Source of the DNA: Monocercomonoides exilis PA203
Lineage: Eukaryota > Protista > Preaxostyla
DNA: 64,000 nucleotides
Direction: 5' to 3'
Assembly: GCA_001643675.2 (NCBI GenBank)
Contig: LSRY02000011.1
Location: forward strand, 1,550,001-1,614,000
A model generated the notes under the pieces. That model was not told the origin of the DNA and did not search any database. It worked only from the letters and a program-made list of their open reading frames with translations. Shown in pieces: positions 8,532-54,701 of this stretch. Each line of letters opens with the position of its first letter. Position 1 is the first letter of the stretch. The translations under genes and the position numbers were made by a program.

Positions 8532-11500
8532 TTAAATAAAGCCAAATCCCTCAGACCCTTCACTCACAGCAAGCAAAAGCCTCTCTTTAAGAATTTCAAA
8601 GCTCGAATAAGGTGGCAACTCCAACTGGTTGAAGCACGTGTGAGCAGTTGGCAGACGTTGGTTGTCAAAGTGAACACGTGTGATGTCTATGCGTTGAGGG
8701 CCATGGATTCCCACAAGATTTCCAAAGCCACCCAGCGGTACTTTCGATGTTCCTGTGATAAACTGCACAAGCCTTGCTTTTTGTTCTTGAGTGAATTCGC
8801 GCACCACTTTCCAGAACCATTTGATAACTTTGTCATTTGCAGAATATCCATTCGAGTAATTTGTATGCCGCATCATATCGTCGATATCTATCTGTGGAAG
8901 TCCGCTAATCAGCAATTCCAGTTCGTTTACATCAAACAGTGTGACAAATTGAATTGGTATCAAATCGTAAAATCCAGAAACAAAGGCATCTATCTGCTGC
9001 TTGATGTCGCGGGTAATTCTCGATTCTGTTATGAGTCTGACATATTCGTATCTGTTCTCGTTTGTAACAGTAATATTCTTTCCGTTTGGCTTCAGTTCCA
9101 ATGTCTTTGCTGTTCCGAAGTCATCAAGTGTCGTCTCAAAGGTCAGCTCTTCTTCTTCGATGTTTGGATGGTCCAGAACCCATTTCATGGATCTGAAGAG
9201 CTCTGGATCGACACCTTCAAGATCGTTAAATACAACAGATATTCCAAGAATGTGCTTATAAAACGAGCGAGTGAAATGAGCATCGAGCAGTTGCTCATCA
9301 CATATTGCTTTTGCAACCATTCTGCCTGCAAAGAAGAAGTAATCGAGGTGGCTGGGTCCATTTACGCTTGAATGAGGATCTGGCTGAAACGTTGCTTGGT
9401 TGACACAAGGCTTGAACAAAGCATAATCAGGGTTGAAGAGCTGTTGAGAAAGCACAACGTAAAACTCCCGCAAAACACCGCCTGCGTCCTCTCCTTCTTC
9501 GCCTTTGAATGATATCTTCAGAGGCTGATACATTTCTCGTGGGGACATGTGCGACAGCATGTTAAAGGCATCTTCAAAGCAAGAACTACGTCTGACTCTC
9601 AGAGGCTGGCGCTTATTCGAAGGATTTATCGAGTTAATGTGTCTGCGCAGAAGAGAACGGAAGATTAAGCGTTTCAAACTGAAAGTGATGCAAAACGGAA
9701 CTCTGAGGAGAGGAGCAAACAGCGAACGCGGATTGATCATCTGAAGGTTGGACAAAAGAAGATAATTTACAAGCAACTTGTGCTGAGCGCCGAATATGTG
9801 AATAGGATGCAGTTCTGTTGATTGTGTGGATGAGGCACTCAAAATAGAAGTTGAGGTTGGAGAACGGGCAAAGAAAGAGTTGCATGCCAATAGAGAAGAT
9901 GCAGGAGAGGAAGTCGATGCCATTGCTGATTTGTTCGTTTGTGCTTCTGGTAGTTCCGAAGAAGCAATTGGCAATGACCTAAGAGAGAACAAAGGAAAAG
10001 ATAGAGAAAGATCAATCGAAGAAGGAACACGAATGAGCGGAGAAGAATAACTTAATGATTTTCTTGAAGATTTGACAGCACGATCAGATGGACTTAAAGA
10101 GGCATTTCCAAGATTTGATGAATGAAGTGAGTAAGATGCATTCTGCGCTTTTGCAGAGAGACTAACACGTTGAGCGGGGAAAAGAGGAGAAAATGAAGAA
10201 GCCAACACCTTTGATGCTGCATTTCCAACAGAAGGAGTTGATAATGCTGAGGATGTAGCAAATTTATTTTCCTTTTGAAGATTATTTGAATGCTCATTTA
10301 TAGAAAGTGGTTTGATACTTGAAATCTCTTTTTCTCTGGTTGCTTCGACTGTGTCTTTCTTTTCCTGTTGTGCTTCAGCTGACCACAAATCGTCGCCAGT
10401 CAGACTTGTGGCAAGGCTCCCGTATTTCTCTTTGATTGATGCAACCATCGTTGGTACAGGCTCAGGGAATTGAGACGAGATATGAGAGACATTAAGCAAG
10501 AGATGAATAGAAGGAGCAAGCATCGGGAAGTACGACCGGATGAAAGCTGAGAAAGCAGCTTCACGAAGACGCAATGAAGCAGGAGTTGGGAACGGAAGAG
10601 TAGGATCAGGAAGAGATGACACCATGTCAATGAATGAAGAAAGCTCATCAGAAGAAGAAGGCGATAGATCAGATTGTGAAGTTGACGAAGAGTTTGACAA
10701 AGGAGATGGTGTGTTCAGTGTGGATGTGGATGAATGTGCTAAATGTGAAAGTAGATTCGGTCTGGATGGGACGACATTCGGTGTTGATAGCATTGGAGTG
10801 AATGTTATGTTGGATGAAAACACCTGATCTCCGCTTGGCGTCTCAAGAGATGTGTAAGGCCGGAGTTGTGCCTGTATCTGGTTAGACGGAATAGAGGCAT
10901 TTCTTGTTTGATCCATTGGAGTTGAAGATGAAGCTGTGAAGATGCTTGGCTCTGCAAACACTTCCGCAGCTGGTTGCGACGGATTTTCTGTCGAAGATGT
11001 TTGAGAACTCGAAGAACAATGGGAAGAAGAAGATGACGAAGAAGAAGAAGAAGTTGATGAATTTGAAGCATCTTGTTCAGAAGAAGCGTCAGTAGGCAAT
11101 TGAACATCAATTTGAGGAAGCGAAGCATCCGTACCAAGGACAATGGTGTCAGTAGGTGACAATCTGATAGGCGATTGGTGTTCTGGTGTTTCGAGAAGCC
11201 TTGTATTATCCTGTTGCTGTTGTGTTGCTGCTGATGATGACTGTTCAGGGCGAATCCTCATTCGACGAGGAGCAGCTGGCACAACCGTTCTCAGCCTGAT
11301 GACGTGTGGAGTCAGAAGAGACAAGCGCACACTTTCACTGTTGTTGATCTCAGACACAGGAGTTATCTGATTTGAGCCGTTCGAATCTGCCGTCCCGTTG
11401 AACGCTGTCTGTCCGCTGTTTGGTGTTTGTTCGGATGAAGGCTCCGGTTGATTGGATGTGATGTTTTCTTCTGTGCTTTCAACATCCATTTTCTGAGCAG

Positions 11501-53800: not shown

Positions 53801-54701
53801 GTCCGCTACACGTGCAGAAATCGGTTTCATTCCAATGAGCGATCTTTTGTTTCAAAAGAATTTAAAGGAAAGCATCAAAGAAAAAGATGATAAATCCAAA
53901 AACATGAAATGTTTCATAACACAAAATATATGTTTAAAAATTACGATCAATTTAAATAGAAATAAGATTAAAGAGAAATTGGTTATATTTTATTAAAAGT
54001 TATGAGCAGACTTGTTTATGGTCAAAAAAAGAAGGATAAGAAATTCCAATGAAGGTTCTGAGCCTTCAAAAAAGTTTTCATTCAGGATATCTTTTGTCAT
54101 TAAAGTATAAACAAATTCTCGAACATCAGAAGCTGGAATGTTATTTTCTGATGCGAGACATAAAAAACGAAGAGCAATTATGCATTGTTCATAAGTAACG
54201 TGGTAAATGTTGCGGTCAACTTCTATAATTTTAGAATCTCTTCCATCAAAACAAAGTCTCGATGATGATTGCGTTTGTTTTCTTTCAAGAAGATAGTTAA
54301 TTATCAAAGTGAAACCCAAATTAGAAATAAACAAAATCAATTGACTATTTTCCTGAGTTATAAAGTCATAATTCTGAAAAAATAAAAGCATAAGCGTTTT
54401 CTTTATTTTAAGGTACTTATCCGTGGTTGAGAAAAGTATTTGTAGAGCATGAATAGTGAGAAATTTTTGTGCTCCCACTAATACTGATTTATTTAGAATT
54501 TCGGTAAGATGATGAATAAGATCAATTAACTTTGCACCTATTTCATTAGAATATCTTGTTAATAACGCTACATATATAAAAAATTTTCGGTAATAATATT
54601 ATTGAAAGCGTAAAGAATAATTTTTGCGCACCATCAAATTGTTTCACCAAAATCTTGTAAGCTGATCTTTTAGTTTCCTCATTCCTTGAGGAATCAAACA
54701 T
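8532..54701 (-). CDS. HUWE1: Giant HUWE1/Tom1/UPL1-class HECT E3 ubiquitin ligase. Proposed exons 54701-54632, 54567-54012, 53843-42871 and 42709-8532 (45,777 nt, ~15,258 aa); the true start may lie further upstream
   Basis: C-terminal HECT domain (FKGEEGEDAGGVLREFY, YFFFAGRMVAKAICDEQLLDAHFTRSFYKHIL, LVQFITGTSKVPLGGF, LPTAHTCFNQLELPPY, ending EGSEGFGFI*). Also a UBA, a UIM and UBM-like repeats, in the order seen in HUWE1/Tom1. The N-terminal YKILVKQFDALL resembles the family's N-terminal ...LxxFDxxL helix. All three introns are GT-AG and keep the frame. Confidence 0.8.
8535..9610 (-). other. HECT catalytic domain; catalytic Cys codon at 8636-8634
   Basis: RQPLRVRRSSCFEDAF through LPTAHTCFNQLELPPYSS to GFGFI; a canonical, uninflated domain of about 350 aa. 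Confidence 0.97.
24250..24500 (-). other. Tandem UBM-like (DUF4414-type) ubiquitin-binding motifs
   Basis: ISPSFLAALPIELQQEVLAQ followed by EIDNLVLLLSTLPMGARQDAMAQLPEDRIQLLPEHLQAEVYRVRER. This matches the (D/S)PxFLxALPxxLxxEVL pattern of HUWE1/Tom1/UPL1. Confidence 0.85.
38125..38183 (-). other. Ubiquitin-interacting motif (UIM)
   Basis: EDMSDEDALLLALQMSTEDQ fits the acidic-LxxAxxxS UIM consensus and lies just C-terminal of the UBA, as in HUWE1. Confidence 0.85.
38703..38829 (-). other. UBA domain
   Basis: PMDIIVETLMEMGTTHARAIQACVELGSELTLDNATAWLFDH has the LxxMG(F)...A..A...A..WL UBA pattern. Confidence 0.85.
42710..42870 (-). other. Spliceosomal intron (161 nt, phase 1) joining the 3672-aa and 11373-aa ORFs
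   Basis: Donor aaa c|GTTTGG at 42870, AT/pyrimidine-rich body, acceptor cactcAG|at at 42710. The spliced codon c+at is His, giving KAEKKKH-RSSHDQQDSSSSSESDYLERFQ in frame. Confidence 0.85.
42871..53843 (-). CDS. Large internal exon (10,973 nt) of the giant HECT ligase; N-terminal region, probably ARM-solenoid with low-complexity inserts
   Basis: The 3672-aa ORF has the same composition as the downstream exon (Leu-rich helical blocks separated by S/N/Q/E-rich tracts). Frame-compatible splice sites bound both ends. Confidence 0.85.
50772..50864. repeat. Compound coding microsatellite (GAA)15(GAT)16 encoding poly-Ser on the minus strand
   Basis: Perfect trinucleotide runs read directly from the sequence; they encode a run of more than 30 Ser (a TCA block, then a TCT block). 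Confidence 0.95.
53020..53145. repeat. Imperfect trinucleotide repeats (GAT/GTT/GAG/GAA) encoding an S/T-rich tract
   Basis: Encodes QQSSSSSSTTSTSTSTTTTTTSSSSTTTTSSSSSSSSPPSSSP on the minus strand. Confidence 0.85.
53844..54011 (-). other. Spliceosomal intron (168 nt, phase 2)
   Basis: Donor aac aa|GTCTGC at 54011 and acceptor gaaacaaaAG|a at 53844. Splicing gives LFLTINK-SLIGMKPISARV. The body is AT-rich and contains an in-frame stop. The acceptor is AAG, weaker than YAG. Confidence 0.7.
54568..54631 (-). other. Spliceosomal intron (64 nt, phase 1)
   Basis: Donor gat g|GTGCGC at 54631 and acceptor atatgtAG|cg at 54568. Splicing gives YKILVKQFDA-LLTRYSNEIGAKLIDLIHHL and removes an in-frame TAA. 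Confidence 0.65.

Follow-up and report, generated by a model that had tools for sequence, protein, structure and literature searches.

We identified, on the minus strand of a 64,000-nucleotide (nt) stretch of the genome of the amitochondriate oxymonad Monocercomonoides exilis PA203 (contig LSRY02000011.1, positions 1,550,001 to 1,614,000; in the following called the window), what is very probably one expressed gene for a giant HECT ubiquitin ligase of the HUWE1/Tom1 type, with some 15,000 residues. The list of open reading frames (ORFs) shows three separate minus-strand frames here, at 8532–42653 (11,373 amino acids from the first start codon), 42812–53830 (3,672 amino acids) and 53993–54478 (a small frame of 161 amino acids). 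A first-pass annotation of the window had proposed that these frames are one gene. The join between the two giant exons, on which this proposal mainly depends, is backed by RNA contigs, by a paralogue within the same genome and by colinearity with a protein of the oxymonad Blattamonas nauphoetae.

The gene model consists of four exons and three introns, followed by motifs downstream of the stop codon. All features are on the minus strand.

54632–54701, minus strand: exon 1, with the ATG at 54701–54699, 23 codons plus 1 base; open frame, codon-usage score above zero in the model frame only
54568–54631, minus strand: proposed intron 1, 64 nt, GTGCGC...TAG, GC content 0.23, G at +5
54012–54567, minus strand: exon 2, 556 nt, 184 whole codons; open, hydrophobic and helix-rich, coding score above zero in the model frame only
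53844–54011, minus strand: proposed intron 2, 168 nt, GTCTGC...AAG (a weak AAG acceptor), GC content 0.21, coding score below zero in every frame
42871–53843, minus strand: exon 3, 10,973 nt, 3,657 whole codons; open frame, RNA contigs over 42871–45999
42710–42870, minus strand: intron 3, 161 nt, GTTTGG...CAG; splicing confirmed by RNA contigs
8532–42709, minus strand: exon 4, 34,178 nt, 11,391 codons plus the stop codon TAA at 8534–8532; open frame
8279–8302, minus strand: three AAATAA motifs, 230–255 nt past the stop codon

A script that checked each exon separately found all four to be open in the required phases, with the terminal TAA as the only in-frame stop. The exons were likewise searched separately and never as a spliced sequence, and gene-wide totals are arithmetic sums of the single-exon lengths. 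These lengths (70 + 556 + 10,973 + 34,178 nt) total 45,777 nt, enough for 15,258 codons and the stop, in agreement with the frame-keeping GT-AG introns and the total of the first-pass annotation, and the computed mass of the protein is ~1.70 megadaltons (MDa). The two large exons, with 11,392 and 3,657 codons, are too long to be open by chance, and no hidden in-frame intron was found in the low-GC stretches of exon 4. Each of the three introns starts with GT and ends with AG. Their GC content is 0.20–0.23, compared to 0.29–0.43 in the exons (0.41–0.43 in the large ones), and their lengths and composition fit the mean intron length of 119 bp and the intron GC content of 27.6% in the published annotation of M. 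exilis (PMC8767320). The AAATAA motifs likely constitute the polyadenylation signal, as AAAUAA and AAUAAA have both been reported in this function for M. exilis (PMC8767320).

For the junction 42871^42709 between the two giant exons, RNA evidence came from four metatranscriptome runs of one study (X1 to X4), used as assembled contigs over a 6-kilobase (kb) stretch at intron 3. The study is probably the one on a polyxenic M. exilis culture (PMC12308965). The four runs contain 95–98% of the sampled words of positions 38000–47999. Contigs in three of the four runs (X1, X3 and X4) skip exactly positions 42710–42870 (161 nt, CT..AC on the plus strand), the shorter flank of these splice-spanning contigs measuring 106–160 nt. 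In run X2, contigs stop at 42709 and begin at 42871. No contig in any of the four runs covers the intron, RNA depth is comparable on either side of it, and no sequence differences between the RNA contigs and the genome are listed. RNA reads across this junction were the check suggested in the first-pass annotation, and the predicted splice was found to the nucleotide.

Three odd contig joints in the same stretch (40567>42821, 42840>43602 and 42979>43601) have only 20–21 nt on one side, foreign letters in between and adjoining GAA/GAT-rich repeats; they were treated as assembly noise. At 43600–43627, RNA word depth reaches ~600 in one bin, due to numerous contigs of 31 letters that pile up on a GAA/GAT-rich sequence. 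This jump is an artefact caused by repeats in the contig index and not a feature of the transcript.

The second line of evidence is a paralogue, found by searching the genome with the HECT region, on the minus strand of another contig (G000:C22:400807-431778) that encodes at least 10,324 residues and whose 5′ end is undefined. It is colinear with exon 3 residues 2127–3633 and exon 4 residues 7–11390. On either side of the junction, exon 3 residues 3578–3633 are anchored to paralogue residues 2534–2589, and exon 4 residues 7–96 to paralogue residues 2602–2693. Because a single 10,324-codon frame is colinear with parts of both exons and spans both sides of the intron 3 position, the paralogue bridges the junction without an intron. 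The third line is the Blattamonas protein BLNAU_9411 (P0010 in our set). Compared with exons 3 and 4, with the HECT domain left out, it yielded 16 anchors in colinear order; the reversed protein gave 4, and eight block-shuffled versions gave 5–8. These three independent lines, RNA, paralogue and Blattamonas colinearity, prove that exons 3 and 4 belong to one gene.

Two alternative explanations were weighed against this evidence. Either large frame can be read alone and the downstream frame has an ATG at 42584, so that two genes might exist, one for a 3,672-amino-acid protein with its stop at 42812 and one for an 11,350-amino-acid HECT ligase. The RNA contigs, however, splice out 42710–42870 exactly and none retains it, both the paralogue and the Blattamonas protein hold the two parts in one chain, depth is alike on both sides, and the 161-nt gap contains neither an AAATAA nor an AATAAA motif. 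Two separate genes are therefore effectively excluded. Still more remote is the possibility of a dead gene or of an error in the assembly. Nanopore sequencing, on which the assembly is based, is prone to insertions and deletions, but 45.8 kb are in frame without a stop, the RNA contigs match the genome and the catalytic residues are intact.

The assignment of this single gene to the HUWE1/Tom1 family is based on its HECT domain, which among solved structures has its best match in HUWE1 and then TOM1, together with a UBA domain, one clear UBM repeat and a UIM-like motif. These elements were located as follows.

38700–38816, minus strand: UBA domain, exon 4 residues 1298–1336 (Pfam UBA_7, E 1.6e-7, 31.6 bits against a cut-off of 27)
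38124–38168, minus strand: UIM-like motif DEDALLLALQMSTED, exon 4 residues 1514–1528, match to the consensus pattern
24432–24512, minus strand: UBM repeat, exon 4 residues 6066–6092 (Pfam UBM, E 1.3e-6, 28 bits against a cut-off of 23.3)
24258–24362, minus strand: degenerate second UBM-like stretch, seen by pattern match and translation only
8538–9452, minus strand: full-length HECT domain (Pfam HECT, E 1.1e-98, profile positions 3–305 of 306)
8634–8636, minus strand: codon of the catalytic cysteine, in AHTCFNQ, 33 residues from the C-terminus

The UBA domain aligns with the UBA region of the Blattamonas protein (residues 1274–1365), and the UBM repeat with the corresponding region in HUWE1 from a fish. 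The UIM-like motif lies ~180 residues after the UBA domain and is the sole match to the UIM consensus in the whole gene by pattern scan; the Pfam UIM profile gave no match to it, so that it stands at motif level only. Of the domains listed in the first-pass annotation, UBA, HECT and one UBM pass the Pfam thresholds, while the second UBM is only a degenerate pattern match and the UIM a match by pattern only. HUWE1 itself has three to four UBMs, which are characteristic of ligases of its type; here, a single copy is above the Pfam threshold.

The HECT domain also has a phenylalanine at position -4 from the C-terminus. When the last 422 residues were compared with all PDB sequences, HUWE1 scored 388 bits, followed by TOM1 (374), HACE1 (347) and Rsp5/NEDD4 (at most 336). 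The lead of HUWE1 and TOM1 over the next HECT family is 27–41 bits, and the match takes in the helix before the HECT domain. This agrees with the first-pass annotation, which had called the protein HUWE1/Tom1-type with a C-terminal HECT domain. The nearest long database proteins combine DUF908, DUF913, UBA, UBM and HECT. In a tree of HECT domains, both M. exilis genes and Blattamonas form a clade with 98/99 support whose inner branching is not resolved; the tree is not a full HECT-family phylogeny, and its Geosiphon row was wrongly cut and is to be disregarded.

From the family, the function of the parts can be suggested. The C-terminal HECT domain would take ubiquitin from an E2 enzyme onto its catalytic cysteine and pass it on to substrates, and the UBA, UIM-like and UBM elements would hold ubiquitin itself or clients that carry it. 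The rest of the protein, long and rich in helices, would act as a scaffold for binding substrates, comparable to that in the structures of HUWE1 and Tom1, which are ring-shaped. At the RNA level, removal of the 161-nt intron joins the 3,657- and 11,392-codon exons, probably preceded by the two small 5′ exons.

In the N-terminal region, two parts of exon 3 can be distinguished.

Within 42871–53843, minus strand: exon 3 residues 1 to ~2120, an extension without known relatives
44186–44725, minus strand: the best conserved N-terminal block, exon 3 residues 3040–3219, corresponding to Blattamonas residues 460–627 (phmmer i-E 2.6e-8)

From about residue 2120 onward, exon 3 follows the N-terminal body of its oxymonad homologues in colinear order, as anchored by the Blattamonas protein and the paralogue. 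Judged by these alignments, this part shares homology with the sequence that precedes the UBA domain in both. In the best conserved block, which also matches the paralogue, PTLLHRL and SFDL...LE..LT are common to the M. exilis and Blattamonas sequences, and the block occupies the position expected for DUF913 relative to the UBA domain.

The first-pass annotation had suggested mapping the N-terminal domains of HUWE1 onto the 3,657-codon exon, and this failed, as no similarity to DUF908 or DUF913 appeared by any method tried. Tiles of 700 amino acids covering exon 2, exon 3 and the first part of exon 4 gave no Pfam match to DUF908, DUF913, ARM or WWE at E-values up to 5, and hhalign of small DUF908 and DUF913 alignments against all tiles and the Blattamonas protein gave probabilities of at most 1%. 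Pfam matches to DUF908 and DUF913 were likewise absent from the Blattamonas protein. A phmmer search with all non-HECT parts against the PDB, including full-length HUWE1 and TOM1 chains, returned low-complexity noise only, and a word-indexed protein search with exon 3 residues 2850–3657 gave no match. A protein-atlas feature search yielded generic HEAT/ARM-like leads only, with scores of at most 0.90. Exon 3 is linked to the HUWE1/Tom1 family via the oxymonad homologues only.

Several points count against a single, expressed HUWE1/Tom1-type gene as modeled here. The hallmarks of the HUWE1/Tom1 N-terminus, DUF908 and DUF913, were detected by no sequence method in the gene. An exhaustive phmmer search, in which the final 1,200 residues of exon 3 were compared with 1.84 billion representatives, gave 0 matches at E ≤0.001; the Blattamonas match is too weak to stand out in a database of such a size. 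An AlphaFold2 model of exon 3 residues 3001–3657, built on a two-sequence alignment, was unusable (mean predicted local distance difference test score 33.8). As for expression, the contigs of the four runs, all from one study, cannot reveal transcript ends or strand, and among the contigs listed none reaches from one end of the 6-kb stretch to the other, still less over an mRNA of 46 kb. RNA support reaches intron 3 only and not introns 1 and 2, the latter with its weak acceptor (AAG), and the evidence is at the DNA and RNA level.

The first of these points leads to another possible origin, a giant HECT ligase of a separate, lineage-specific family in which UBA and UBM-like motifs were combined independently. 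The missing DUF908 and DUF913, the lack of a WWE domain in our searches and the lack of similarity to the full-length HUWE1 and TOM1 structures outside of HECT and the short motifs would all suit such an origin. We nevertheless consider it improbable. The HECT domain, including the preceding helix, is nearer to HUWE1/TOM1 than to the next family by the margin given above, and the closest long database proteins hold DUF908, DUF913, UBA, UBM and HECT together. The order UBA, UIM-like motif, UBM and HECT equals that of HUWE1, including the UBM characteristic of this type. In the Blattamonas protein, the UBA domain lies at residues 1287–1323, close to its position in human HUWE1. Finally, accepted homologs in Tetrahymena and Plasmodium lose such Pfam hits as well. 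Membership in the HUWE1/Tom1 family remains the favored assignment.

The exact four-exon model is somewhat less certain than the gene as a whole, and we regard it as probable from codon usage and intron features. With codon usage trained on exon 4, exon 1 scored 0.26 and exon 2 0.18 bits per codon, above zero in their predicted frames only and compared to 0.27 at the start of exon 3, while the introns and the upstream spacer scored below zero in all frames. The donors of introns 1 and 2 have a G at +5, as do those of intron 3 and of three introns in EF2 genes. A further upstream exon is unlikely because a divergent gene begins at 55097. In total, the junctions 54632^54567 and 54012^53843 affect 212 residues or 1.4% of the protein, and without the two 5′ introns a start at the ATG at 53830 still gives ~15,045 residues.

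Such a shorter protein is a distinctly less likely, but serious, alternative. Translation would start at this ATG, located 4 codons into exon 3 and in frame, and exons 1 and 2 would belong to a 5′ untranslated region (UTR) with an upstream ORF, or to a separate gene of ~217 residues. Besides the AAG acceptor of intron 2, it is consistent with the occurrence of 5′ UTR introns in M. exilis (PMC8767320). Furthermore, exon 2 has no detectable homolog in the paralogue locus, in Blattamonas or in our other searches, and a search upstream of the paralogue found no exon-2-like exon. On the other hand, exon 2 stays open over 184 codons of AT-rich DNA and shows the codon bias of the giant gene only in the in-phase frame, and introns 1 and 2 preserve the frame and resemble the verified introns in their G at +5. 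Two genes would also stand only ~150 nt apart, compared to a mean intergenic distance of 1,855 bp in M. exilis (PMC8767320). We therefore retain the four-exon model.

We compared the predicted protein with its relatives. Human HUWE1 has 4,374 amino acids and yeast Tom1 ~3,270, and full-length structures have been solved (e.g., 7jq9 and 9dns). Shared with these are the best HECT match, the order of UBA, UIM-like, UBM and HECT elements and the catalytic cysteine 33 residues from the end. The M. exilis protein differs in being 3.5 to 4.7 times longer, in having one clear UBM only, in lacking detectable DUF908, DUF913 and WWE, and in carrying ~2,300 extra N-terminal residues. The estimates of the first-pass annotation, ~1.6–1.7 MDa and ~3.5–4.5 times the usual length, hold well, the protein being ~3.5 times as long as human HUWE1. 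Another protist homolog greatly inflated in length is PfHEUL of Plasmodium falciparum (PF3D7_0826100; 8,591 amino acids, ~1 MDa), whose HECT domain is ~50% identical to that of HUWE1 and whose upstream sequence has no discernible similarity except for a DUF908 hit (PMC12007708). In contrast to PfHEUL with its detectable DUF908, no such domain was detected in the M. exilis protein, which is ~1.8 times longer.

The Blattamonas relative, with 5,822 amino acids, is 2.6 times shorter than the M. exilis protein. It is colinear across the whole body, the UBA domain being among the 16 anchors, but has no counterpart to the first ~2,300 M. exilis residues. The paralogue is also a giant HUWE1-like gene with UBM and HECT, with a HECT identity of 58%. 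It differs in its uninterrupted frame without an intron at the intron 3 position, and no Pfam UBA was found in it. A 136-codon frame at 431987–432394 on the same contig may be an upstream exon of the paralogue.

The difference in length is spread along the whole protein, with intervals between conserved anchors 1.8 to 2.9 times those of Blattamonas. The first anchor (exon 3 residues 2121–2182, Blattamonas 49–109) is individually weak; the ~2,300 residues without a counterpart lie before it. Tandem repeats are almost absent, internal duplications were not found in the protein, low-entropy sequence makes up only ~15%, and serine accounts for 16% of residues. As far as the sequence tells, the added material is unique and consists neither of repeats nor of duplications. 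By a crude count, hydrophobic-rich windows cover ~9,100 residues, compared to ~4,700 in Blattamonas, and by the same count ~60% of the protein could be structured.

We tentatively raise the idea, which we consider doubtful, that the ~10,000 extra residues form a folded scaffold extending the HUWE1 solenoid, plus a lineage-specific N-terminal module of ~2,300 residues, rather than disordered filler. If true, this protein of 1.7 MDa would surpass every other single-chain E3 ligase known, and the maintenance of two such giants in M. exilis would imply selection for size itself. Weaker HECT matches were found on two further contigs (C8:388714-389220 and C36:661220-661807, G000) inside frames of 7,152 and 7,239 codons, which would be further giant HECT ligases of other subfamilies. 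With these HECT-bearing frames, protein gigantism may be a genome-wide trait.

The largest HECT protein in a length-limited database search had 7,801 residues, and PfHEUL is the largest HUWE1 homolog that we found described in a paper. The M. exilis protein exceeds every relative found, in line with the suggestion that it may be among the largest E3 ligases. No paper mentioning this gene was found in a literature search; because the M. exilis PA203 genome is published with an annotation, a gene model may already exist. Rather than a new kind of system, the gene is a real, record-sized addition to a known family, together with a second giant paralogue. As ligases, HUWE1 and Tom1 are central to quality control, and their size already restricts their study; an ortholog of 1.7 MDa shows how far this architecture stretches with its catalytic and ubiquitin-binding modules kept in order. 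The 5,822-amino-acid relative from the sister genus, the intron-less paralogue of at least 10,324 residues and the giant itself form a natural series in which neutral growth can be set against added function. Moreover, paralogues can verify exon joins in giant genes where long transcripts cannot be sequenced.

Looking at the surroundings, the ligase gene is flanked by two large plus-strand frames, at 55097–59119 (1,340 codons) and 4514–7906 (1,130 codons), neither of which matched a Pfam family at an E-value of 0.001. The former is divergent from the ligase gene and lies 395 nt from its start. Upstream of the paralogue, a 2,927-codon frame (G000:C22:434099-442879, minus strand) has a protein kinase domain at its end (PK_Tyr_Ser-Thr, 2.2e-9); probably, this is a separate gene that belongs to the large family of kinases reported in M. 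exilis. A histone H2A-like frame is located at 443563–444033 on this contig. At 59802–62429 on the minus strand of the window lies a paralogue of EF2 that has 88% identity to the canonical protein of M. exilis and a single intron of ~90 nt (62235–62324, GTTCGT...CAG). The canonical protein itself is encoded, at 100% identity, on a different contig of the assembly. The genome contains at least four EF2 copies, two near-identical inverted ones on contig C29 and one each on C5 and C36.

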